Under the pieces are notes generated by a model that saw only the letters and a list, made by a program, of their open reading frames with translations, had not been told where the DNA came from and ran no database searches. Positions 4,601 to 28,519 of a DNA stretch of 64,000 nucleotides are shown here, one piece after another. The translations under genes and the position numbers were made by a program. The DNA is from Sphaerodactylus townsendi. Taxonomy: Eukaryota. Within the stretch, counting starts at the first letter, position 1. Every line of letters begins with the position of its first letter. The stretch lies in NCBI RefSeq assembly GCF_021028975.2, contig NC_059440.1:29760001-29824000 (forward strand), written 5' to 3'.

Positions 4601-7400
4601 CCTCCTTCCAGCTCAAAATGGTCTCAAAGAGGGACAGGTCTGGGATGTTCTTTCTGACACCAACCAGGGCCCCGGGTGTGTCGACACTCATTGCGAGATT
4701 TTTCTCAGCAGCCCAAATGCCCAGTGCTGACGGGCTTTGCCTTTGGGGAGATTCGTCATCCTCAGAAGAGGACCCTGGTGGAGCCATCAGGTGCAAAAAT
4801 GGCAGCTGGGCAACCGTATGGTGTGGCTGGCCACAGACTGTTGGTGGGGAGGCAGCAGCTGCTCGATGCCTGTCGCCCCCCTGAGCTGCCTCATCTGCCC
4901 GCCTCCATCGGTCACTTGATTTTTGCATTCCGGCTCTCCAAGCCCTCTGAACCCACTCAGCCCCTCCCACCTTTATGACTGGGGGGGCGGACCCTTGGTG
5001 CCTGGACTGGCAAGGGACTCCGGCCCCCACTTGGGTGCCCCCACGCCACCAGCGTTGCCTTTCTTTGCAGCCGGTGGCCCCCTCCCCTCCAGACTGCAGC
5101 AGGCGGTTCTTCCGGTGGTGGACCACGCCCACTGCACCCAGCCTGACTGGTGGGGAGCCCTGGCGATCCGGGAAACCATGGTGTGCGCCGGCGGAGACAT
5201 CCGAGCAGGCTGCAATGTGAGTGGGGCACCAATAGCAGTGCGGCTGTGAGCTCTGCCGGCCACAGTCTCCGTGGCACCTTCTGCCACGGGGACCCTGAAT
5301 GGCGGCCTGGGAGAGAAGCCTTGTGGTGCGGGCCAGGGGGTGAAGGCAAGATCCCACACGGAGCCTGCAAAACAGGCCCCTGACCTCTGGGCGGGTGTGG
5401 GTGTCTTGTCTGCAGGGTGACTCCGGTGGCCCCCTCAACTGCCAGGCTGCAGATGGAAGATGGCAGGTCCACGGCATTGCCAGCTTTGTCTCTGGTTTGG
5501 GATGCAACGCCCTGAAGAAACCCACCGTCTTCACCCGAGTCTCTGCATTCGATGACTGGATCCAGGAAGTGAGTTGTCTTTGGTACCCAGTCAGTGGAGC
5601 AGCAGTGGCGTAGTGGTTAAGAGCAGGTGCATTCTAATCTGGAGGAACCGGGTTTGATGCCCCACTCTGCCACTTGAGCTGTGGAGGTTTATCTGGTGAA
5701 CTAGATTAGCTTGTGCACTCCAACACACGTCAGCTGGGTGACCTTGGGCTAATCCAGGGGTCTGTAACCTGTGGCACTTCAGATGTTTATGGACTACAAA
5801 TTCCATCAGCCCCTGCCAGCATGGCCAATTGACCATGCTGGCAAGGGCCGATGGGAATTGTAGTCCATGAACGTCTGGAAAGCCGCAGGTTGCAGACCCC
5901 TGGGCTAGCCACAGCTTCTCGGAGCTCTCTCAGCCCCACCCACTTCAGGGTGTTTGATGTGAGGAGGGAAGGGCAAGGAGATTGTAAACCCCTTTGTAAG
6001 TCTCCTACAGGAGAGAAAAGGNNNNNNNNNNNNNNNNNNNNNNNNNNNNNNNNNNNNNNNNNNNNNNNNNNNNNNNNNNNNNNNNNNNNNNNNNNNNNNN
6101 NNNNNNNNNNNNNNNNNNNNNNNNNNNNNNNNNNNNNNNNNNNNNNNNNNNNNAAGGGGTTTGAGGTTCAGCAGAAGGCAACTTACTAGAGCGGTAACAT
6201 CTGGATAATGATCCGGACCCTACTCTGAAGGAAGTGCAGCCGTGCAGCCGTGTGCCTGCTCCATGCTGCAACCTCTGAGTCCGGTGGGCGCGTGGCCTGG
6301 TGTTGCTGGATAGATTTCAGCCTGAACTTGGAGTCAGTTCCAGTCTTCAGTTCAACCTAGTTTCAGACCATAGTAATCTTTCTCCTCATTACTATCAGTT
6401 TGCCAGGAAAATTTAATATTTTACTGTGACAATTTTATTGTATTTTGTCAATTTTAAGAAAATGGTAAGCTCCTATAAAAGCCTGAAGTGGCTGGTTTGG
6501 AAGAACAAAAAATCTATTTAATGGGGCAGGAAAGAAAGGAAATTGGAAGTGTAGCTCAGCCAGGTCAGAACTTGTCCAGGCTGCAGCTCTTGACCAAGTG
6601 GAGATCCAGGAGGAAGCCCCCCCCCCCCCCGCAAACAGAACAAGAACACCTCGCAGCAGCTGAATGGCTAATGGATTTTGTGAGTCAGAGGCCACCATCC
6701 AACGCACATGCAGGCTTTGAGCACACGTGTGGTTGTGGAGAACATGGTTCCCTGGTTGTGTAGATTATGTATGTATTTCAAATAGTTTCACCCTCCCCTT
6801 TGGATTTTTAGTTTATAAATCCTGCAAAATAAACTCAAGAATAAAATGTCTGAAACAAGATGGAAGCAATGCCCACACCAAGCACCAGTCAAATAGACCA
6901 CAGCCAAAACTGGCTGGAAACAGCCTCCCCCTGAAAATTTGGAGGAGATCAAATAGATTTACCCTGGAACCGAAGAGACAGAAGAGCAGGCACCAAGTGG
7001 GTGGTGCCTAATGAGGGTGCCACTGCAAAGCCCTTCGGGGGTGAGGCGGCCTATAAATAAATAAACAAACAGACAGACAGACAGACAGACAAATAAATAA
7101 GGTCCTGACCATGGTAGCTGCCTGCTTGTCCCTCCAGAGGTGGGGGGGGGGGCACAGAATAGAATCCCAAAGCAGCCCGGAGAAGAGGGTCCTTCAGTTG
7201 GCGCTGCTGCCTTTCCCAGGCCAGGCTCATGGCTACCACTCTGGGCAGGGTGGCGCGTGTGAGAAAGGAGAGAGCAAGGACCCACGAGCGGCATAACAGA
7301 GGAATCTCTGCCCTGCAACCAACCCTGTAGCCCAGATTTCATTCCTAAAAATACCCTTCCTTTCCCCCTTTCCTTTCAGACCATGGCTGGCCATCTGTGA
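1659..7400 (+). CDS. CELA3: Chymotrypsin-like elastase family member 3 / proproteinase E (S1A serine protease), 8 exons, 271 aa
   Basis: Exons 1659-1698, 2568-2653, 3319-3416, 3785-3919, 4320-4456, 5071-5216, 5416-5568, 7380-7400; all GT-AG, 816 nt in one frame. Signal peptide [13 protein letters not shown], activation site R|VVNGED, triad TAAHC / NDIAL / GDSGGP, CELA3-type motifs ([32 protein letters not shown]). CELA3A vs 3B cannot be assigned. Confidence 0.95.
5596..6021 (+). mobile_element. tRNA-derived squamate SINE (CORE/Squam3-like) interrupted by a hAT MITE and cut by an assembly gap
   Basis: A-box-like tggcgtagtggtt and B-box-like gggtttgatgccc; body aligns with SINE copies at 23036-23312 and ~23895-24195. 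Confidence 0.85.
5755..5902. mobile_element. hAT-type MITE, almost fully palindromic
   Basis: TIRs CAGGGGTCTG(T/C)AACCTG...CAGGTTGCAGACCCCTG; 8-bp flanks GGCTAATC / GGCTAGCC, each one change from GGCTAGTC found in the uninterrupted SINE near 24037. Confidence 0.85.
6022..6153. other. Assembly gap (132 N)
   Basis: Run of N inside CELA3 intron 7. Confidence 1.
7025..7100 (+). mobile_element. L2-type LINE 3' tail with microsatellite
   Basis: gcccttcgggggtgaggcggcctataaataaataaa followed by (ACAG)n; similar to the tail at ~44215-44260. Confidence 0.55.
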
Positions 7401-12021: not shown

Positions 12022-12389
12022 TCAGTCTTCTCTGGCTTCCTGTGATCCCATGTAAAGGCTGTCACTCCTCCTTCTCCGGACAGCCCACCCCATCCGATGG
12101 CCCCGCAGCCAGCGCCCGGTGTTCGCCAGAAGAGCTGGACAGCGCCTTCCAGCCCGGCCAGAGAGGGAATTATGGGGTCCAGGGAGCCGGTCCCTGAGGG
12201 GCTTCTGGGCCTGAGTGGCGCCTTGCGGACCCTCCAGCTGCCGGGGAACTGAGGGGGGAGGGGGCACAGGAAGGAGGAGGGTGGGCCTCTGGGGGGTCCC
12301 CAAGACGCCCGGGGTCTCCTGAGGCATTGGTGGCATTCAAGAGCATCCCGGAGCCAGTGGTGGTGTGAGGGGAGTGTATCCAGCAGAAT

Positions 12390-13500
12390 TCTCGCCGAGC
12401 TGGAGCTGCCGAATAGCAGATGGCTGCGGCCACCGGAGAGCACCCCCTCGCTCCGTCCGTGGCCGAGCCAGGCGGCGGGGGAGGCGCGGGGGGGGGCTGC
12501 CGGGCCCCGCCCCTTCCTGTGGAATTTCCCCGCGGGGACGGGAGCCATAAAAGCGGCGGCGAGCGGAGCGGCCAGACCCGCGGAGGCAGCAGCAGCAGCA
12601 GCAGCCATCGGCAGACCGAGCGGCAGCGGCGTGGCCCGGTGAGCGCCTACCTGCCTGCCTGGCGGACCGTATTGATGCCGCGTGACGCGCCACAGCGGGG
12701 AGCGCCCGGCGGCCAGGGAAGAGTCCGGGGAGCAGCCAGAAGGAAGGCGCTGCGGCCCGGCACCTCGGGCGCCCTCTTCAGCGGGAGCCTCGGAGCGCCC
12801 GTCGCCTCGCGGCCATGGTGCTGGCCCAGGGCAGCCCTCCCGGTGAGCGGGCCGCCCCACGAGCCTCCCCGCCTGGCCGCAGTCTACCCCGCCCCGCCCC
12901 GCCGGCGTCCGTGGCCCGGGCACGGATGTGACAGGAGGGACATCCTCTCGCCGCCAGGCACACCCGCTCTTCCCAAGGGCGGCCGGCTGGAGGCTAAATG
13001 GACCTTGGCGGGGCGCAAGAGAGGTGGGGACGCATACTCCGGAGCCCGCGGCACCCACCCTGCCTGGGCACAGGGCCCCGGGGGTTGGCTGGGGGCGTCC
13101 GGGTGGGCTGCCTGCAGTGGCTGGAGGGGAAAGGGCGGCGCTGCGGGCGGAGCTGGCCGGGCTGGCGTCTGGCAGGTCGCGGCTCTTGTTGCCGGCTCTG
13201 TCCTGGGCCGGGGGCGCCCCCCGCCCCACCCCGCGGCCTCCTGGCCAGGACGACGACGGGCAGCAGCGGCGGCCGGCAACTTGGCAAACCTCCCTCCTCG
13301 CCACAGCCGGCGGCAAGCCCTGCGCCAAGGGGAGGGGGCGCGGCTGGGTAGCGGCGCGCAGCTGACCTCTCCTCCTCCTCCTCCCCCGCAGCGGCGACAC
13401 GAGAGGAGCCGGCGGCTTTCCCGTTTCAGCCGTGCCAAGATGTGGATGGTGCTGGTGAGTCCGGGGACTGGGAGGCCCTCACCCGCTGCGGCGGACAAAA
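12390..13500 (+). promoter_or_regulatory. CpG-island promoter with GC box, NF-kB-like site, TATA-like box and putative first exons
   Basis: Dense CpG; GGAATTTCCC at 12521-12530; CATAAAAG at ~12547-12553; donor CCG|GTGAGC after 12638; exon 13392-13454 with branch point, pyrimidine tract, gccaagATG (13440) and donor GTGAGT. Confidence 0.7.
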
Positions 13501-14486
13501 GTCCTCCCCCCCGCCCCACACTTTTCCACCTGAGGGAGAACCAGAGAGGAAGGGAACACCTCCCCCCGCCCCCCCCCCCCACACACGGGGACCCAAAGCA
13601 GAGAAGCGCCGGGCAGGTCTGCAGCCCTTTCCCAGAGGAGCTGAGCCGGGGTGCCCGACGTGCCCCTGGGTGAATGCAGCCCAGAGGTCCCCTGGGTGGG
13701 TGGGAGCCAGGAGAAGCAGATCTGCAGGCCTCCCAAGAAGAGGGGGGGGGGGCAGAAGCAGGCAGCTGCCTTGGAGGAACTGGTCTGCTCTTACCCTTTA
13801 ATGAGATCCTGTGGGGCTTAGCTTGATGCCCCCCCCCCTCCTCTTGACCTCAATCCTTCCTGCTTCCTGCTCTCTCGCTTTTTATCTCTTGGGGCCTCAT
13901 CACCCCCGTGGCTCCTCTCCCATTTGATGCTCAGCCTCCAAGGCCAGATCCTGGCCTCCTTTTCCTTGGAGGGGAAACGACAGTTTGCTGATTGAAGCAT
14001 TCCCCCCTCCCCCGCACAAATGCTGAGGGGCTGCAGACCCTGCTCCGTCCCACCTGCCCTTTGCGGCCAGAGACCAGCCTGGCCGGGGGCTGCCTTTGCA
14101 AACACAGCTGCTGCTGCTGCAGATGTCCAGAGGCAGGGTGGCGCTGAGACGGCTGCCTGGGGTGGCACCCAAGGGCAGCTGCCTAGGAGCGCAGGGTGCA
14201 GGCAGACTCTCAGGGGCACCCAAAGGGCCCTGCCTGGATTCCCCCCAGGGGTCTCCCCACTTCCGAGTTTTCTGTGTGCAGGCCCGTCGGCTTTGCTTTG
14301 TCAGCCAGGAACTCCAAGACCCACTTTTGGAGATGAAGTTTCCAGCCAATTCTGTTTGGAGCTGCCTGTGGGGGCAGGAGGGTGAGAGCCCCCCCCCCCT
14401 CCCGAGGTTCCTGTGGCCACCTTCCTCTCTGGTTCCCTGCTGCCTCTCCAAGGTTTTCCATGGAGCTCTTCGGCCCTGGCCCTGGC

Positions 14487-17500: not shown

Positions 17501-20500
17501 GTGCAACGAGGCAGCCGGTGACTTCTGGGCTCCCCACAGGGCTCCTCCAGCCTCGTGAGGGGGAAGAGGCTGAGCAGGGCCTCTGGCAGTCGGCAGGCGT
17601 TGGCTGTTCTGGGCAGGCCCAAGATGCCTTCCTGGCCTCCGGGGCCCAGGAATGCTGGGAGGGGAGCAGCCTCTGCAGTGGTGTCTTCTCAAAGCAGAAG
17701 GATGCCAAAGGGTCCCTCCAGAAGAATGGGAAGGCCCTGGGGGGGGTGTGTGTGTGTGTGTGCAGATGTTTGTGCCTGAGTGTGTGCTTCAGCATCACTG
17801 TGTCATGGACTGCAGCCCTGGCTGTGTGGTGCGTGCTGCCTGGATTCAGGCCTGCCTTAAATACTGTTTGTTGCTGATATGTTTCTGTTTCTGTTTCTGC
17901 TAATGAGAATTCACCTGGGAGAGACTTGCCATGCCTGGCTCTAGCCTGGATTTCCCTTGGAACAGAATTAATGCCTGGGTCTGCTTCTGAGTCGTCCAGG
18001 ACTACGTGCAAGGGTAGTCCTAGTGTATTTCTGCAGAGAACAAAGGAGGGGGATTCCCCCATCTAGATTTAGAGTAACTCTCAAGTCCCAGCAAATAATG
18101 GGGGACTCAACACAGAAGAACACATAAATATTTCATTCGGCGTATTGTCGTCCCCGCCAGGTTCATGTTTTCTTTAATGGAAGTGCAGGTGCAGATCCTG
18201 GCACGAGCTGTCCCCTTCCCCAGGCTTCCATTCCATGGTGCCCGTCCCAAGCACCTTTGGGCCAGCTGGGCAACGCTCCCTGCTCTCCCTGGGAGCAAAT
18301 GTTCCTGGAGAAAAGTTTGGAAGCTGAGTGGAGGTGGGCAGGGGGGGGGGTCATCTGGCCGCTGAGAAACTCTGTAGAAAGCCTTGCCCAGAACGGTGCT
18401 TGCTGGGCATATTTATGCAAGATGCTATCTCAGCTGCTTCCTTCCGAGGCAGATATTAGTAGTAATTGAGGCCTCAGGATGCCTGGCACCCAGGGAACAG
18501 AAGGTCCCTTCCAAGGGTCCCTGTCTGGGATTTCTTCTCCAAAGGGACTACGGTAACACTAAAAGAGAATTAGGGGTGCAGCAATCGCCATTGAATATGT
18601 GGAGGGGTACACGTAACCTTAGCCTGACCTACCTCACAGGGTTATTGTGAGGATGCCCCACATCTGCAGGCCTGAGCTCCTAACAATTGGGCCAGGAAAA
18701 ATGTATCTGATAGGTAGGATTCTAGTGGATTCCCAGGGGTCCCACCTGGGCATTCCCTGCTCAAAAGGCCGCAGTGGAGGTCAGGCTGTGCAATTCAGTC
18801 CTCGGTGGACAGAGGTGATCTCAGAGGCTGCCAGAAGCAGGAGGCAGCCGGTGGGTACAGATCCAGACATAATAAATTGCACCCAATAGCTTACAATTCT
18901 CTGTCCAAAACTATGCCTATCTAATTCCCTCAGTGCAGAGAAAAGGCTGCCAGTCGCAACCTGCCAACCAGAGCGGTCTCTGTAAGAGCGATGCCACTGT
19001 CCACCTGCCCCCTTTCTCACTGTGGGCAGAACAGCGAAATACACCTGCCTGTGACCAAACAAAGGGAGGAGGGAGAATCTGCAGAATCACTGTTGTTGTC
19101 TTTTCTGCTGGGCAGCCAAGAGTCCTGCGGCATGCACAAGGAGAAATGCCCCGAACTTGGTTTGTGCATCTGTCCCATGGGGCTTCTAGAACATGTAGCC
19201 AAAGGCTGCTGAAAGAATTTGAGGACGGGAAACCCAACGAGCATCACCCTCTCTGCTCCAAAGAGCTGGATTTTAAAGGGGCGTCAATACAAGGCAGTGC
19301 AGGGAGGAAGTGTGAGCCAGGAGAAGCAGCTGACACGGGGGCCTGCAGTGAGTAGAGCCACGGCTTCCCTCCTGCCTTTGGAGGACCCCTCAGGGACCCG
19401 ATAGTCCGTTTGCACTCTCGAGGGTCTGTAAGGGATTCCCAAACTTGCCTCTGCTAATAAACCAGAAGCCCCTAGACCCGTGGTGGCGAACCATTGGCAC
19501 TCAGAATGTTATGGACTACAATTCCCATCAGCCCCTGCCGGCTTTGGCCAATTGGTCCCTGCTGGCAGGGGCTGATAAGAATCAAGAGTGCTGGTGTCCT
19601 GGAACCATAGGTGTCAAACTCGCGGCCCTCCAGGTGTGTTGCTTGGACTTTACGGTTCCGCAATCCCCTGCCAGCATCATGCTGGCAGAGTCCATATGAA
19701 CTGTGAATCCATGAGTTTGTACCTGTGCCCTAGACCCATCATGCATACAGCATCACAGCAGTGAATCTTCCCCAAATCCTCTGCAGTATCAACAGTTGAT
19801 TTCCTGTTGCTTCCTTGCAAGCTTGTCTAACCTTCCTTTCAGAGGCATTAGTTGTGAAAGAGTTCCTTCTGGAAATGAAGTGAGGGGAGGGAACGTCATG
19901 GGCATTTTTCCCACTGCGGCTCAAGGAAGCTCAGAGCCTTTTGTTTGCTCTGTAAGCACTTAAAAAGCACTCCACGTGAATGGCCGCTAAGTCCAAAGAG
20001 CACACCACGCCACAGATTCCTTTGCTTTACACCTCTGGGCAAGACTTCCACCTCCTCCAGAGCAGAAAGGCCAGCCGGCTAAGAGGCCTTTGGTTCCTCT
20101 AAGTGACAGTCACTTAAGAACGATCCACTTTGGCGGGCCGCGCACCACATGCTGGGTTTTACCCGCTGAAATTCTTTGCTCTCCCTTTTGGCTGTGAGCG
20201 TCGGCACATTCTCAGCCCCGGAGGCCAATGTTCTGCGAGGTCTGGCATCTGTTCTAAGAGTTGGAAGAAGGCCTGGTTTCTAGAGAAATGGGGGCCAGAA
20301 AAGACGTCTGTGCATATCACACGTGCCCAAGCTACTCACAATGCAAGGCCCACTTGGTCATTGTGTTTTTGTTCAGGGGGAAGGGCACACCTGAAATGCG
20401 TCTGTTGGGATGGGGGCTCGGGGTGAGCCTGGGTGGGGGGAGGGGAGGGGAGGGGAGAGGGTTGCTGAACAGGTGGGTCGCTGGGGAGGGGGGAGTTTGG

Positions 20501-20606
20501 AAACGCCAGGTTCTCACTGCTGGATTGTGGATGTTTGGCTCTGACTGCTGTTTTCTTTCAGATGAAGAATGCCATGAACCTCCCTGGCTTTGGAAACCCA
20601 TCAAGG
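13440..20606 (+). CDS. TMEM269: Putative N-terminal coding exons of TMEM269 (13440-13454, 16295-16385, 20562-20606)
   Basis: Good acceptors and frame-compatible with the exon at 22187 (MWMVL-SLPVAS...DSK-DEECHEPPWLWKPIK-GIFQY), but the model needs two GC donors (CAAGG|GCAGG). The 20562 exon is the best supported. Confidence 0.35.
17181..17271. mobile_element. Degenerate hAT MITE remnant
   Basis: cataggtgtcaaactc...ggactacagttcccat / atgggaactgtagtcc internal palindrome, same type as 5755-5902. Confidence 0.6.
19477..19730. mobile_element. Two adjacent degenerate hAT MITE remnants
   Basis: ggactacaattcccatcagcccctgcc...gcaggggctgat and cataggtgtcaaactcgcggccctccag motifs. Confidence 0.55.
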
Positions 20607-21248
20607 GCAGGGTGCAAAACACACTAGTAGGATATGTCCCTTCACACTTTCTCTAAAGAGTAGCCCTTTCTTGGGGGAGATAAAATGTTTAGCATTAAGG
20701 AGTGGGGTTGTTATTCTTTTCTCGATTGTGGCGGGGGATGTTTCGTTTCCAAGTGACCGTATATCGGATGGTAATGGGAAGAGAAGGGTGTACGGGGGTG
20801 GGGGTGGAATATAGCAGGAACATGGATAAGAGCTACCTTTGAAGAGCAGATTCGTGCATGTACCTGTAGCGAGAGATTTCAGTGTGGGCTAAACGAAAGC
20901 CGCGCGGGAAGGCAGAACTGAGCGTATCCGCCAACTGCCTCTGCTGCCCTCAGCTTCCGTTGTGTTGCTGCCGTGTTTTCTGCTGAGCTCAGCACCATGA
21001 GCGGGGTGGGTGGGTGGGCTGTGTAATGCCAGCTTCATGCTGAAGCTGTCCCGGAGACAGCCCACCTCCTGTGGCTGGCGGTTCTCCAGAAGGCCAGCTC
21101 TTCCGGGAAAGGCTGTTAGGTGGCCAGAGGCGAGCCGAGGAGAGCATTTTACTGGTACGGCTCAGCAAATGGGTGTGGTGGTGGTGGTGGTGGTGGTGGT
21201 GGTGGGTGGGTGGGGCGAATGAACATCTGACACTGTGTTATACTAGAC

Positions 21249-22186: not shown

Positions 22187-25100
22187 GTATATTTCAGTAC
22201 ATCAAGAAGCTCTTCCTGACTGAGCAAGCGGGCCGGGCTCAGGTGGTGGACTTCCTGCGTAAGAATGTGGCTAATTCCATCTCCATGGCGAACCTTGTCA
22301 CGGGCCTCTTCTCCATCTTGTGCACCCTCAACGGGTACGTGGACCCGTGTGACCCAGCCCAAGAGTCATGTACACAGCCCGAGCATTTGTTTGTGTGGTC
22401 CAGTATTAATGAAATAAATGTGCTACGTTCAAAACAATATAAGATACACAAACACGCGTGGCACATAGGCTCCGGCTCAATAATGACGCAATAATATATA
22501 CAAGATTGTGGACATTGTTGGTTTAACAATGACATCATTATGGACCTGAGAGAAGGTTGTCTTGCAATAAATTGTTGCATGAATTGGATTTAAAGTGGAG
22601 ATATATGTGTTATGCAGATATAATAGTTTGATAAGTCTAATAGCCAACAATTTGGCATACTTTACAAGTAACAAATAGGTAATATAAATTTCTTGAGCCG
22701 GCGCCTATGTGCCACGCGTGTTTGTGTATCTTATATTGTGGTCCAGTATTGCCTCCTTGAAGCAGCAATGGCTCTTGGGATCTCAGACACAAAGTGGTGT
22801 GGAGCGGCCAGGGATTGAATGGAGGCCTTCGGCTCTTTCCCGGCAAGCTCCAGGGCCCTCCTCTCACCCAGCCGTGACCTTGGGCTGGAGAGCTGTGGAA
22901 TGCACTGGTTAAAAGCAGCAGACCCTTTCAGCAGATGGACCTCCTGGGCGGGAGAAGATGAGTTGTTTGGTGGTTTTGCAGCCTGGATCATGTTAAGCCT
23001 GAGGAGGTTTTATGCTTCATGGGTGACGTGTCCAAAGAGCCAGCGTGGCATCAGGGTTGCGGTGGACTCTAACCTGTAGGGCCGGGTTTGATTCCTCGCT
23101 CCTCCACACGAGTGGCAGACTCTTGTCTGGTGAACTGAAGCCTGCTGGGTGACCTTGGGCCCATCACAGTTCTCTTTGAACTCTCTCAGCCCCACTGACC
23201 TCACGAGGTGTCTGTAGCAGGGAGAGGAAAGGAAGGAGTTTGTGAGCCTCTTTGAGACTTCTTACAGGAGAGAAAGGCCGGGTATAAATCCAAACTCTTC
23301 TGTTCTCCTTCCTTCTCGGGGCGCACGGGACGCAGACACTCTCTCTGCTGTCTGAGAGGAAGAGAGGTGCGGGCACTGGGACACTCTTTGCCCTGGCGGT
23401 GTCAGGCATGTGCCAGTGTGCGTGGAATGGGGATGGGGCGCAAGAGATTGGCATGGGGCCAGAATCCTCCCCCTGTACGCTGACCGTCTCGCTTGGTGGC
23501 TCAGGGAATGCGGGACCTCAGAGGGTAGCCATGGCAACGCCTGCTCATGCCCTCGCCTCTCCCCCTGCAGGCTGCACCATTCCGCATGCTGGCTGGTGCT
23601 GATCGGGTTCCTGCTGGACCTGGCCGATGGAGCCGTCGCCAGGCAGCTGAACGCCTGCTCCGCCTTGGGTGAGTCCGTCTCCCGGCCCCCCCTCCCCGCC
23701 CCTTCTGTGCTTCAGTGGCCGAGCCTTTGACCCGCTTTGCTTTGCCAGCAAACGAGGCCTCAGTGGGGAGCCTGTCCCGTTCCCAGAGGAGTTTGAAAGT
23801 GAGGCCACAGCCTGTGGCTGCTGTCCCGGCAGTGCGCACAAGGAGCGAGTGGCAGGGGGCAAAACAGGCTTGAAACCCCCTACAGTGACTGAAACTGAAG
23901 TGGTGTAGGAGGTTAAGAGCTCATGCATCTAAACTGGAGGAACTGGGTCTGATTCCCAGCTCTGGCGCCTGTGGAGGCTTATCTGGGGAATTCAGATTAG
24001 CCTGTGCACTCCCACACACGCCAGCTGGGTGGCCTTGGGCTAGTCACAGCTTCTCGGAGCTCTCTCAGCCCCACCCACCTCACAGGGTGTTTGTTGTGAG
24101 GGGGGAAGGGCAAGGAGATTGTCAGCCCCTTTGAGTCTCCTGCAGGAGAGAAAGGGGGGATATAAATCCAAACACTTCTTCTTCTCTTCTTCCCTCTCTG
24201 CTTCTCAAATGGCCAAGGGGGAGTGCCTCTGAGGATGTATTTCGTTTGATGTGCTGGATTCGGGCATCCTGTTTGGGCGGAAAAGTTTGGTCTGAGTCTG
24301 GGAGAGGGGGGCCCCTGGTGGCTGCTGGTGTGCGAGGAATGTGGCCAAAGCATGGCGCTTCGTGGCTGTCCGGGACCCACCAGCTTGCCTCTCTCTCTGA
24401 TCTCCCCCAGGAGCTAAACTGGACGACTTTGCAGACTTCACCACCTTCGGCCTGGCTACGGCCCTGCTCTTGCAGGCCCACGGGATCCTGGACGGGGTGC
24501 TGGCCATCGTGTACGTGCTGGCCGTGTTCACACGCCTGTGCTTCTTCTCCAGTGGTGAGTCCCTGGCTGCTGAGGCCAGCCTAGAGAGCGAGGGGGGCGA
24601 GGCACTGCAGGGAACAGGACGGAGACAAAGGAACAGAATGGCTGCTCCTCTGTCCCCTTTGCCACCCCCCTTTCCTGCCCTTTCCTGCAGGGATCCCCTT
24701 CACGTACCGGGGCCTGCCTTGCCCGTACGGCTCCTCGGTGCTGGCTTCCACCTACCTCCTAACCGGGGGCAACCTCCTGGTGATAAGGATTGTTGCCATG
24801 GTGATGATTCTCTTCATGGTGGATCGGGGCTGCTACCCTCACGACAAAGTCCTGGAGTCCCAGGCTTGGAAGAAGGTGGTGTACGTGGGAGGTGAGTTCC
24901 CATCGGGCCGACGGGGGCGTCTCAGCAGGAATGGGCTTAGTCTACCGGGCAGTCCACGCTGGCAGGTTTGGGATGAGGGGGGGTGGATTCCGTGGCCATT
25001 TAGAGAATAGATCCCTTCTGGCCCAGTGAAAGTCATGAAGCAAACCACGCTTGGCCTTGGTCTGGAAACCTCCAGCAGTGCTCGTTGTTGTCAAGAGCCG

Positions 25101-25826
25101 AGAATGGGATGGTGGCCCGCTGAGGGCTTCTCTCCTCCTCCCCAGTCAAGGTCCAGTTTGAACCCTCAGTAACCAGATGGCAGCTCTGCCCGGAGGGCCC
25201 TGGTTTCCTCAGCGGCACAGCCAAAGGCCTCGGCGTGGTTTGGGAGGACCCTCGGCTGGGAATTTCCTTGTTCCTGCTGGCAATGGAGCCTTTCCCTGAC
25301 ATCCCGTTCTGATCTGATGGCAGCTCTTGGCTCCCCTCTGCTGCACAAATTGTGCATTATGCAGGGACGGGACATAGCTCCACACTAGCAGCCTTGGACC
25401 GTGGGCGGGTGTGCTTACGCACCCATGCTGGAGAGAAAAGAGTGAGGCGGAAGAACGGAGGCTGCAGCTGCGGCTGGCTGAAGCGGCAGAGCAGGTCCTC
25501 AAATGTGACGGGGCCCCAAATCCCAGCGCAGCATTTTCTGGGGTCTTCTTTCTTCTGCTGGCAGGTTCAGACTGTAAAGGGCAGGGACTTCTTCTCCGAG
25601 GCCCACGTCAGGCTGAGATGAATGTTGTGTGCTGGTTACGTGGGACACTTTGGAAGGGACACCTGTGCTCCACCAGCCTTCGTCTGAACTCTCTTTCTCT
25701 CTCTCTGGCGTTCCAGGGGTCGTGGTGATTTTCTTCGCTGCCTTCCCCACAGCCTCGCTGTATTATCTCCTTTGGGCCATTTCATACATCTGTTTCCCCA
25801 CTGCCTTGTGGAGCCACAAAGCGTGA
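22187..25826 (+). CDS. TMEM269: Transmembrane protein 269, CDP-alcohol phosphotransferase family; five core exons, start codon upstream
   Basis: Exons 22187-22334, 23571-23668, 24411-24554, 24691-24891, 25717-25826; GT-AG, one frame: ...RKNVANSISMANLVTGLFSILCTLNGLHHSACWLVLIGFLLDLADGAVARQLNACSALGAKLDDFADFTTFGLATALLL...RLCFFSSGIPFTYRGLPCPY...ESQAWKKVVYVGG...ALWSHKA*. Next to SVBP, as recalled for human. Confidence 0.9.
22394..22750. mobile_element. AT-rich insertion with 47-bp inverted arms and 14-bp flanking direct repeat
   Basis: Arms 22434-22480 and 22693-22739 (1 mismatch); direct repeat TGTGGTCCAGTATT at 22394-22407 and 22737-22750. Confidence 0.7.
23036..23312 (+). mobile_element. tRNA-derived squamate SINE
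   Basis: B-box-like gggtttgattcc, core ctgggtgaccttggg, 3' end caggagagaaagg...ataaatccaaactcttc. Confidence 0.8.
23895..24195 (+). mobile_element. tRNA-derived squamate SINE (Squam3-like)
   Basis: Aligns with 5596-6021; ends ataaatccaaacacttcttcttc. Confidence 0.85.
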
Positions 25827-28519
25827 GGCTGGCCGACGCACTGCACAGGTGACGTTGGCTTCGTGCGCAGCTGCGGTGAAATGTCCGAGGCAGCCCTGCC
25901 CTTCCGACCGAGCGATCCAGTGTTAACATCCATGAGTTGCCTAAACCTTACTAAAGCTTTCACCGTCCTGACTTGAACAAAATGGCTTTGGGGTGTCTCC
26001 ATCACATCCTCTCGCGCTGTGTCCTCCACGCAGGAGGGCTGTCTGGGGAGCGCAGCGGCCGCTGGCTGCCAGGTGAACAGAAAGCATCACCCTCCGAGCC
26101 TCATCTTCGGCGTAGATGTGAATGTACAGATTCTTGATAAACAAAGAACACTCTAGAGACTTAAGAGAAAGTCATTTTTAGATTTTTAAAAAATCCTCGG
26201 TGTAACATGTTGATGGCTTCTGGGAGCTTCCTTCTGCTCCGTGCTCTGCACTACCTGGCAGGAATGCTCTTCTGTCCCAGAGAAGGAGACCCCGCACTCC
26301 CTGCCCACGGGCAGCCACCTTTGCCTGGGAAACCTTGGGGAGGGGGAGGGGGCAGCGCTTAAAGGGAGCGTGCAGGCATCTTGGGTTTGTTCAGATGTGC
26401 AACACAACTCAGAGCACCTCTCAGGAGTTAATTCTTACTGTTTTGGGACCAAAACAGGGTCTGTGGTGAAGGAGGAACCACTTTGGCTCTCAAGGCCAAA
26501 GTCCACCTCCCTCCTGTGGCTTTTTTGGCCTTCTTTGATCTCTCCAGGTTGCCCAACTCAGACTATCCCATCCCAAATGCAGACCCATTGAAACTACAGA
26601 GACTTAACCTTTCATGCCTCTTCAAAGATTCCAGACAATGTCCAGTTTTACTTGGAGGATCACCAGCCAAGCGATAGCTAAGAACCTTCATCCTGGCCAG
26701 TTTCCAACCTCTGCAGAGATGCTTGTGGGCATCTGAGCAGATGCTCTGGGAGGTGGACTTGAAGCCAGCTCAGAGATTTCTCAGTTATTCAGCATCAAGA
26801 CGCTGATCCAGCCGAGTCCACCAATCCCACAGAAACCAGTCAGAGGGGCTGTGACAACACAGAACCGCCTTTTAGGGAATGTCCAACGGTCCTGCGGGTC
26901 TGAAAAAAGCTCTGGCTGGACCTTTTACCGCCACACAGCTCTCTCGTTTCTTTGCATTCAGTTTCCAGGCTCTGGCACATAAATTACTTCTGTATTAAAT
27001 AGCCCTGTATGATATGTCTGCCATCAGGACAGAGCATAGCATTTCCCTCACCCCTTAAAGGAGACAAAAGGCCATTGAGCTGCTTTCCTTATCAAGAATG
27101 CCAGTCCCTGCACAGAAACACCTGGAGGGCCTCTGAAAGCTCAGTCCCCGCCCCACCCCGCTCCTGACAAAGGTCAGTGGGTTGCACCCCAGAAGATGAC
27201 TCTCTTTTTGCTTACCTAAAAACTTGCTAGGCTCCTGAGTGCTTTGGCCTCTCCTTTGAGGCAAAGCCCTGATTACTTATTTGCATGAAGCCAGCAAGTG
27301 GATTTGCTGCTGTCCAAACAGAACAAAAACTCCCCGTGTGGGGGAGCACTGGGCTATTTATTTTTTACTGAACAACGTAGCGAGATGTTCCTAAAAAAAT
27401 TAATCTTCTTCCTACAATTGTTTTTAATATGAGAGTGGGGAAATGTCTGGAAGATTTATTGGGTTTCTTTGGAAAACTGTACTTGAAACAGGCAACCTTG
27501 TGTTTTGGGAAATAAAATGTGGAGACAGAGATTCCTGTGTTTTGCAAGCTGATTTCATCTGGCACAGCCAGCAGGCTTGGGATGGCCTTCAGCGGCAGCT
27601 GCTGTATCGAGGGGTTGTCTCAAATGCTGGTGGATCAGGACTGTAAGGAAAGGGTGAACACACTAGCCCGGTTCAAAAGGCAATGAGTCCTCAGACCCTC
27701 ATAAAACCCACAAAACAGCTTTATTTCTTTAAACGTTTATTTCTCAAACCACAGTAATAAATAGAGTTAAAAAAGAGAGTTGCAAAACAGAGAGGATGGA
27801 ACGGAGCACCCAAGAGAGAAGCACAGAGTTGGGTGTTGGCTGGGGTGCAGATGGGCTGGTGTTGGAGAAGCCCCTCCGGCTGTCTGTCTGTCTGTTCGAG
27901 GGCTGAAGCCACGCTCGGGGCTCCGTCCCACGCAGGAAGAACGCCTTCACTCGCCCGACGCCTGCATCTGCTTGCAGAAGGCATCGAACTGCTGCTGCTC
28001 CAGTTCCGTCATCACTCGGTTGAGGGCATAAATCTGGGAACCAAACAAAACAGGCACATGTTATACATCTGGCGGGGGGTGGGGTGGGGTGGGGTGGGAT
28101 TGCCACCTGGAAAAGCGGCTCCAGCAGAGGTCTTCTGAACTATTCTGGGATGGAGACCAGATGTGCCCTCCCCCCCTGCCTTCTGGATACTAGCTGCTGG
28201 GAGACCAATGCTGGGGCAGAGGCTTCGAGCCCATCCTGGTCACTGGGAAAACAGGATGGCTGACCAGAAGGATCCACCTTGGACAGCTCCTTGGCCCCCT
28301 CTTCTCCACACTAGCGGGGGGGGGCCCTCATGCTGAAGTGAAGCGGGGGAGGGGGTAAGGGGCTCCCCCACCCAACAGCAAGCAGAGGAAGGAGACCCCC
28401 AGCATTGCGGACGTCACTCAGCTCAGGGAAGCGCCCAGGTCCAGTTCAGGGAGCTCCAGAGCACCTTGCCCCGCCCGCCTACCGGAGCCCGGCTGATACA
28501 CGTGGACCTGATGCCTTTC

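Follow-up and report, generated by a model that had tools for sequence, protein, structure and literature searches.

The TMEM269 locus and its split active-site motif

The stretch analyzed here, hereafter the window, comprises 64,000 nucleotides of contig NC_059440.1 of the gecko Sphaerodactylus townsendi (positions 29,760,001 to 29,824,000, forward strand) and contains an ortholog of TMEM269. Reading the sequence directly and translating it exon by exon, we find five exons of this gene on the plus strand between 22187 and 25826. Exon A (22187–22334) encodes the N-terminal helix and the first transmembrane helix, IFQYIKKLF...ANSISMANLVTG...TLN, with 41–43 of its 48 residues identical to gecko orthologs. 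Exon B (23571–23668) contains the first half of an active site, D-L-A-D-G-A-V-A-R (23617–23643), and exon C (24411–24554) the second half, G-A-K-L-D-D-F-A-D, which runs to 24436 and is followed by FGLATALL and RLCFF. Exon D (24691–24891) encodes YRGLPCPY, the short helices 5 and 6, and YPHDKVLESQAWKK. Exon E (25717–25826) encodes the last two helices, matches the C-termini of gecko orthologs and ends in a TGA stop codon at 25824–25826. AG and GT flank the exons at all borders from A to E, and the split codons, all encoding glycine, are in phase (GG|G, G|GA, G|GG and G|GG). A preliminary description of this DNA, made from the sequence, had assigned the gene to the span 22187–25826; the motif exons do lie there, but the coding region starts further upstream, with an exon at 13440, and exon D ends at 24891.

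The active-site motif is interrupted by an intron. Exon B ends in ...LLDLADGAVARQLNACSAL, with the codon of the first aspartate (D1) at 23617–23619 and that of the arginine at 23641–23643. The next motif codon, for glycine, is divided between position 23668 and positions 24411–24412. Exon C then opens with AKLDDFAD, in which the third and fourth aspartates (D3 and D4) occupy 24422–24424 and 24434–24436. Joined, the two exons read DLADGAVAR-x8-GAKLDDFAD, the signature DxxDGxxAR-x8-GxxxDxxxD of the CDP-alcohol phosphotransferase (CAPT) family (Pfam PF01066), with all four aspartates present. Both the four-aspartate motif and the intron that divides its glycine at 23668|24411 had been proposed in the preliminary description, and the exon borders, phases and translations agree with it. 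The 32 residues of exon B alone score above the PF01066 threshold (23.5 bits against a cut-off of 22, E 7.8e-5) and match the pssA model TIGR00473 with an E-value of 5e-5. Exons B, C and D are colinear on the NCBIfam models for pssA and archaetidylserine synthase at profile positions 21–49, 53–99 and 126–173, exon C aligning to the pssA profile and exon D to that of archaetidylserine synthase. Because exon B passes PF01066 on its own and the three exons are colinear on pssA-type models, the match to the motif is not due to chance. The proposed joining of 23668 to 24411 is supported by a transcript contig of another reptile, and by that species only: L122, a 1897-nt Logan contig with an uninterrupted open reading frame (ORF) of 245 codons, aligns to the window exon by exon and breaks precisely at 23668|24411. 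Annotated TMEM269 proteins of other species are likewise continuous across this junction.

The locus is the gecko ortholog of TMEM269, as first described. Its exons are 90% identical to TMEM269 of Paroedura and 89% identical to that of Eublepharis, the five core exons are common to the window, Eublepharis and L122, and the maximum-likelihood gene tree agrees with the species tree. Exon D, used as a phmmer query on a set of 1.84 billion representatives, retrieved 81 proteins, nearly all of them vertebrate TMEM269. Gene order gives the same assignment. In Eublepharis the gene extends over 15 kb, with CCDC23/SVBP downstream in tail-to-tail orientation; in the window the last coding exon of SVBP/CCDC23 lies at 27947–28066 on the minus strand, also tail to tail with TMEM269. 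No prokaryotic relative carrying TMEM269-specific peptides was found in a scan of 185,579 prokaryotic genomes, a search of the ESM Atlas returned only TMEM269's own clusters, and an Rfam scan of the window gave no match. TMEM269 is thus an ordinary intron-bearing, syntenic vertebrate gene with no sign of recent horizontal transfer, against which the prokaryotic scan, the introns and the synteny all speak.

Family placement and conservation of the active site

The assignment of TMEM269 to its superfamily is not new. Public databases place it in PF01066 and sometimes name it a phosphatidylserine (PS) synthase. Among 334 relatives retrieved with the shark protein P0013, all of which carry PF01066, the names are "transmembrane protein 269" or, automatically assigned, "cardiolipin synthase (CMP-forming)" or "CDP-diacylglycerol--serine O-phosphatidyltransferase". 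To place the protein more closely, full-length tests were carried out on the Eublepharis ortholog P0114, whose sequence is 89% identical to the window exons; the window itself was searched exon by exon. In the hidden Markov model (HMM) search called for by the preliminary description, P0114 scores 51 bits against PF01066 (CDP-OH_P_transf). Among the NCBIfam models pssA TIGR00473 is best, at 65 bits and with 152 of its 153 positions aligned. The archaetidylserine synthase models come next at 55–60 bits and all other CAPT models lie at or below 34, with 17–34 bits for the related bacterial and archaeal models of phosphatidylinositol-phosphate (PIP) synthase, ClsA, pgsA and Pcs, so that pssA leads the models other than PS synthase by about 30 bits.

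Searches of known structures give the same order. A profile built from 18 orthologs (A2) finds MjPSS, the membrane PS synthase of M. jannaschii (PDB 7B1K, 7POW), among PDB chain sequences with an E-value of 1e-7, and the next match, PgsA, has an E-value of 0.27. MjPSS was reached only by this profile; single-exon phmmer searches of the PDB sequences returned nothing useful. The structure comparison suggested earlier was made with an AF2 model of P0114, for which the Foldseek matches are led by MjPSS (E 3.5e-5, template-modeling (TM) score 0.57/0.67, about 204 columns, which cover about 204 of its 200–204 residues), then PIPS (E 0.14), DIPPS, PgsA and AF2299. The model contains eight helices, of which the fifth and sixth are short; with helices 7 and 8 also present, it shows the architecture of the PS synthases. 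The solved structures of PIPS, PgsA and DIPPS have six helices, and it is the eight helices with short 5 and 6 that separate MjPSS from the six-helix CAPT enzymes (PMC8633023).

In sequence, TMEM269 has in common with the membrane PS synthases, namely MjPSS, bacterial PssA of subclass II (TIGR00473) and yeast Cho1, the full motif with its x8 spacing. The flanking likenesses noted in the preliminary description are real in the HMMER alignment to MjPSS: N..G in helix 1, FG.A..LL, RL..F (R101-L and F105 of MjPSS) and GLP.P. In contrast to these enzymes, TMEM269 is a vertebrate gene with introns, is only 24–26% identical to them and scores below the equivalog level; relative to Cho1 it is placed by the literature motif only. 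The four-aspartate signature, a score above the Pfam gathering threshold and, in the P0114 model, a polytopic fold superposable on solved CAPT structures together place TMEM269 in the CAPT superfamily. Within it, three independent measures (the HMM scores, the PDB sequence search and the predicted fold) identify the PssA/archaetidylserine synthase family as the nearest known one, which upholds the PssA-type kinship first suggested, no Cho1 sequence having been among those compared. The window product is accordingly predicted to be a CAPT protein about 241 residues long, with eight helices arranged as in the PssA/archaetidylserine-synthase branch.

The animal CAPT enzymes known so far are CDIPT, CRLS1, CEPT1, CHPT1 and SELENOI, of which CDIPT and CRLS1 use CDP-diacylglycerol (CDP-DAG). 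They have the superfamily and the motif in common with TMEM269, which would be an uncharacterized addition to a known kind of enzyme and not a new kind. PTDSS1 and PTDSS2 make PS by exchanging the head group of phosphatidylcholine or phosphatidylethanolamine, without CDP-DAG. Their fold and chemistry are unrelated to those of TMEM269; the class of product could be the same if serine were the acceptor of TMEM269.

The active site is conserved throughout non-mammalian vertebrates, as the preliminary description had anticipated. Of 120 non-mammalian clusters formed at 90% identity, from chimaera to birds, 119 carry the motif intact, and the sole exception is a gene model that lacks exon C. Mammals were represented by platypus and by a therian sample of alpaca, hare, pig, bear, rodents, bats, sengi, macaque, aye-aye and opossums, with no human sequence among them. 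In platypus the motif is complete. The placental sequence is D.A[IV]G..[TN]R...G.ELNDFAV, in which D2, D3 and D4 are lost, and that of opossums is S.ASG..AR...TKI[DN]DFAE. Judged from these sequences, marsupials and placentals lost the site through different substitutions, and the loss is therian rather than mammalian; the degeneracy that had been ascribed to mammals holds for placentals and opossums but not for platypus. Therian TMEM269 is nonetheless the same gene, with the same exon structure, a conserved C-terminal half, and P3H1 as its upstream neighbor in alpaca (in geckos SVBP lies downstream); what it lacks, in contrast to the window protein, is the catalytic residues.

The decay coincides with a change in rate. 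In the maximum-likelihood tree, path lengths from the amniote node are 0.05 to turtle, 0.17 to gecko, 0.66 to platypus, 1.11 to opossum and 1.16 to alpaca. The stem branches are long (0.58 for marsupials, 0.70 for placentals) and the crown placental branches short, and the mammalian branches on which the motif decays are accelerated 4- to 20-fold. The ratio of nonsynonymous to synonymous rates (dN/dS) was estimated from Nei-Gojobori counts summed exon by exon, with pN and pS the corresponding proportions of differences. Between the window and Eublepharis, dN/dS is 0.10 at a dS of 0.51, and the motif exons have a pN of only 0.02–0.03 (exon B, pN 0.029 and pS 0.465; exon C, pN 0.019 and pS 0.347). 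Compared with the reptile transcript L122, the values are 0.18 and 0.77, with a pN of 0.04–0.07 in the motif exons. Gecko TMEM269 is therefore under strong purifying selection. Between alpaca and hare, dN/dS is 0.17 at a dS of 0.62; exon C remains constrained (pN 0.02) and exon B is relaxed (pN/pS 0.45). Because this ratio indicates purifying selection, the placental sequences fit a conserved pseudoenzyme rather than a dying gene, a description that fits therian TMEM269 in general. The aspartate that follows D3, Asp96, is invariant or nearly so in the TMEM269 proteins examined, including the therian proteins without D3 and D4, which suggests a role for this residue beyond catalysis. GLPC.Y and YP.D..L.S..WKK are also invariant or nearly so, therians included.

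Predicted activity, acceptor pocket and alternatives

From the family placement and the conservation of the site we infer, with moderate confidence, that TMEM269 of non-therian vertebrates is an active CDP-DAG-dependent phosphatidyltransferase. If the mechanism resembles that of MjPSS, a divalent metal on the CDP-DAG pyrophosphate would be bound by D1, D2 and D3, while D3 and D4 would bind a second one and activate a water molecule that deprotonates the acceptor hydroxyl. This hydroxyl would then attack the beta-phosphate to yield cytidine monophosphate (CMP) and a phosphatidyl-alcohol. Serine is a candidate acceptor. In therian mammals, the same protein would persist as a conserved pseudoenzyme.

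Several observations weigh against this assignment. TMEM269 orthologs score 63–68 bits against pssA, below the equivalog cut-off of 107. The AF2 model used for the fold comparison is of medium confidence (predicted local distance difference test 69, predicted TM score 0.65) and describes P0114, not the joined product of the window. The therian protein remains under selection although its catalytic aspartates are gone (the placental ratio given above), and because therians keep such a protein, part of the conserved role of TMEM269 may be non-catalytic. A literature search found no published activity or functional study for any TMEM269. Exon 1 of the window is 10 nt shorter than its counterparts in Eublepharis and in the X4 contig described below. 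Finally, three residues of the acceptor pocket are replaced.

To locate these replacements, the profile–MjPSS alignment was placed on the residues described in the MjPSS structure paper and the Cho1 mutagenesis paper. Asp41, Asp44, Arg49, Ala59, Asp62, Asp66, Arg101 (Cho1 R186), Phe105 (Cho1 F190) and the GLP turn of MjPSS are kept in TMEM269. Ser63 is replaced by Asp, Arg104 (Cho1 R189) by Phe and Gly98 (Cho1 G183) by Val; Ser65 is replaced by Ala. Ser63, described as "highly conserved" among PS synthases, is a ligand of the serine substrate (PMC8633023), and in the Cho1 mutagenesis paper R189A raises the Km for serine and G183A is almost inactive. The three pocket replacements are near-invariant across non-mammals: D3 is followed by Asp, in one case by Glu, in 119 of 119 motif-bearing non-mammalian clusters, and 102 of them read RLCFFSS. 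The aligned sequences thus indicate a pocket with one positive charge fewer, through the change of Arg104 to Phe, and one negative charge more, through that of Ser63 to Asp. Such a pocket would accommodate an acceptor that has no carboxylate as readily as serine, if not more so, and the change in charge gives reason to question whether serine is the sole, or indeed the actual, acceptor. As a more specific version of the phosphatidyltransferase reading, we tentatively suggest that non-therian vertebrates (fish, amphibians, reptiles, birds and monotremes) run a CDP-DAG head-group transferase absent from textbook accounts of animals, which, because its pocket is charge-swapped, may form either PS, with changed kinetics, or some other phosphatidyl-alcohol, and that marsupials and placentals abandoned it independently and kept the protein as a pseudoenzyme. 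This combined account is possible rather than probable.

It is unlikely that TMEM269 is specifically a CDP-diacylglycerol--serine O-phosphatidyltransferase (EC 2.7.8.8), which would give vertebrates a second route to PS beside PTDSS1/2. The leading HMMs, pssA and archaetidylserine synthase, point to it, as does MjPSS as the top PDB match in both sequence and fold, and of the serine site Ala59, Asp62, Asp66, Phe105 and Arg101 are kept. In sole larvae, moreover, TMEM269 is induced together with cds2 (PMC7569605). The complete set of serine-site residues (Ala59, Asp62, Ser63, Asp66 and Phe105 of MjPSS; V-L-C-G-L-x-R-L-A-R-F of Cho1) is not present, however: the Ser63 position is acidic in all 119 motif-bearing non-mammalian clusters, and the equivalents of Cho1 R189 and G183 are Phe and Val. 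Since the score also falls below the 107-bit cut-off, membership in the membrane PS synthase family is not established, and the PS-specific part of the preliminary description is weakened: pssA and MjPSS remain the best matches, but at 65 against 107 bits and with three serine-site residues replaced.

We consider it similarly improbable that TMEM269 is a non-enzyme in all vertebrates, its motif serving to bind a metal together with CDP-DAG or a different nucleotide-lipid in a sensing, scaffolding or regulatory role, with therians having dispensed with the ligand. Placental TMEM269, which has lost D2, D3 and D4 and still shows a dN/dS of 0.17 with an exon C pN of 0.02, would be explained by such a role, as would the retention of Asp96, GLPC.Y and YP.D..L.S..WKK in therians, and the literature search returned no reported activity. 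On the other hand, all catalytic residues have stayed invariant in non-therians for roughly 450 million years, and 4- to 20-fold faster mammalian branches at the point of motif decay are what is expected when a catalytic constraint is lifted.

We found no description in the literature of the combined pattern of a site intact outside Theria, decayed in parallel within it, and bearing a changed acceptor pocket. The textbook view is that animals make PS only by base exchange and use CDP-DAG only for phosphatidylinositol, phosphatidylglycerol and cardiolipin. If the phosphatidyltransferase is active, it would add a step to the phospholipid metabolism of most vertebrate classes.

This step appears to be regulated in fish by diet, temperature and salinity. 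In the sole-larva study, tmem269, called a PS synthase by annotation, rises with the CDP-DAG synthase gene cds2 on a low-phospholipid diet (PMC7569605); in salmon, TMEM269 is expressed more weakly at 20 C than at 10 C; and in stickleback si:dkey-205h13.1, linked by name to the TMEM269 ortholog, is differentially expressed between marine and freshwater fish and carries signals of selection. Human TMEM269 has been reported to show the lowest agreement among variant-effect predictors. With its catalytic site lost twice in Theria and the gene still under selection, TMEM269 offers a natural experiment in pseudoenzyme evolution. In a review of fungal lipids, TMEM269 is given as the human equivalent of CHO1, the two having no alignable identity. 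The antifungal argument that Cho1 has no host homolog would be qualified: the TMEM269 of the human lineage is without the catalytic residues, whereas birds, reptiles, amphibians and fish keep them, which affects the use of Cho1 inhibitors in veterinary and wildlife settings.

Prokaryotic CAPT enzymes with an aspartate after D3 were considered as a hint to the acceptor and dropped, MjPSS being at least as close to TMEM269 as they are. The pattern DG..AR-x8-G..LDD..D occurs at no fewer than 120 prokaryotic loci, the best 41 of which score highest, below cut-off, with archaetidylinositol-phosphate/PIP synthase models. The prokaryotic loci L001–L120 represent a widespread and apparently unnamed bacterial CAPT family of about 227–245 residues with the consensus DNCDGEVAR...SS.FGAKFDD..DW. 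It scores best, far under the cut-off, with archaetidylinositol-phosphate/PIP synthase models, and it is common in metagenome-assembled genomes of Rhodospirillales, Gemmatimonadales, Verrucomicrobia and Gammaproteobacteria.

First coding exon and minor features

Coding exon 1 lies at 13440–13454 on the plus strand (ATG TGG ATG GTG CTG, donor GTGAGT), as aligned to exon 1 of Eublepharis. The latter is 25 nt long, encodes MWMVLPPS+G and uses the same donor. Spliced to 22187 as assembled, the window exon would shift the frame and meet a stop codon at 22217–22219. We mapped contigs of four sequencing runs, none of them on record as RNA for S. townsendi, onto 12300–14000. The long contigs of all four start near 12584, and 12300–12413 is covered by none. 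One of them, the X4 contig, which comes from S. townsendi or a very close species, runs from about 12584 through exon 1 into exon A. It agrees with the window up to 13451 and then has 13 additional letters, directly followed by the start of exon A (GTATATTTCAG...), giving an exon 1 that is also 25 nt long and the reading MWMVSPPSG-IFQYI. The X4 contig looks like a spliced transcript that uses the acceptor at 22187, although contigs of this kind cannot prove RNA or where it starts.

All four runs differ from the window by many small insertions and deletions in this GC-rich kilobase and by two replaced segments between 12649 and 13059. Because of these nearby differences, and because the other exons are intact and constrained, the 10-nt deficit is probably an assembly error, or else a polymorphism, rather than a sign of gene death. 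That the deficit is real and this copy a young pseudogene in the sequenced animal is very improbable: the window does read ATGTGGATGGTGCTG directly before GTGAGT where Eublepharis and the X4 contig carry 10 more letters, but the remaining exons are intact with a dN/dS of 0.10, the nearby indels in all four runs point to misassembly or polymorphism, the X4 contig has the full 25-nt exon spliced in frame, and an in-frame escape is available through the phase-0 donor and a cryptic acceptor at 22198.

An alternative first exon starting from the ATG at 12815 (MVLAQGSPP + G|GTGAGC, 12815–12843) is in phase with the acceptor at 22187. It was rejected as the main start because the start at 13440 aligns to those of Eublepharis and Paroedura and because the X4 contig runs unspliced through 12815. 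The letters ATGGTGCTGG are common to this upstream ORF, which lies in the 5' leader, and to exon 1. The region 12584–13439 on the plus strand, where the contigs start and the GC content is 0.70, is tentatively assigned as the likely 5' leader, within a promoter region rich in CpG; a TATA-like ATAAAAG lies upstream of it, near 12539.

A candidate optional cassette exon (DEECHEPPWLWKPIK...) at 20562–20626 on the plus strand was identified by tblastn with the long TMEM269 isoforms of fish, shark and ostrich. It lies inside a 650-nt intronic block (20357–21002) that is 75% identical to the Eublepharis intron. Its donor is uncertain, with GC after 20606 or GT after 20611 or 20626 as the options; the phase-correct donor in S. 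townsendi would be GC rather than GT.

The introns flanking exon B contain the same interspersed repeat, recognized by eye at about 23040–23300 and 23900–24190 and likely a short interspersed nuclear element (...gaccttgggc...ctctcagcccca...tataaatccaaac...). A (GGT)n microsatellite occupies 21170–21205 in intron 1, and 132 N at 6022–6153 mark an assembly gap or mask. Beyond the 3' end of TMEM269, a CpG-rich stretch at 28–32 kb of the window may hold the SVBP promoter.

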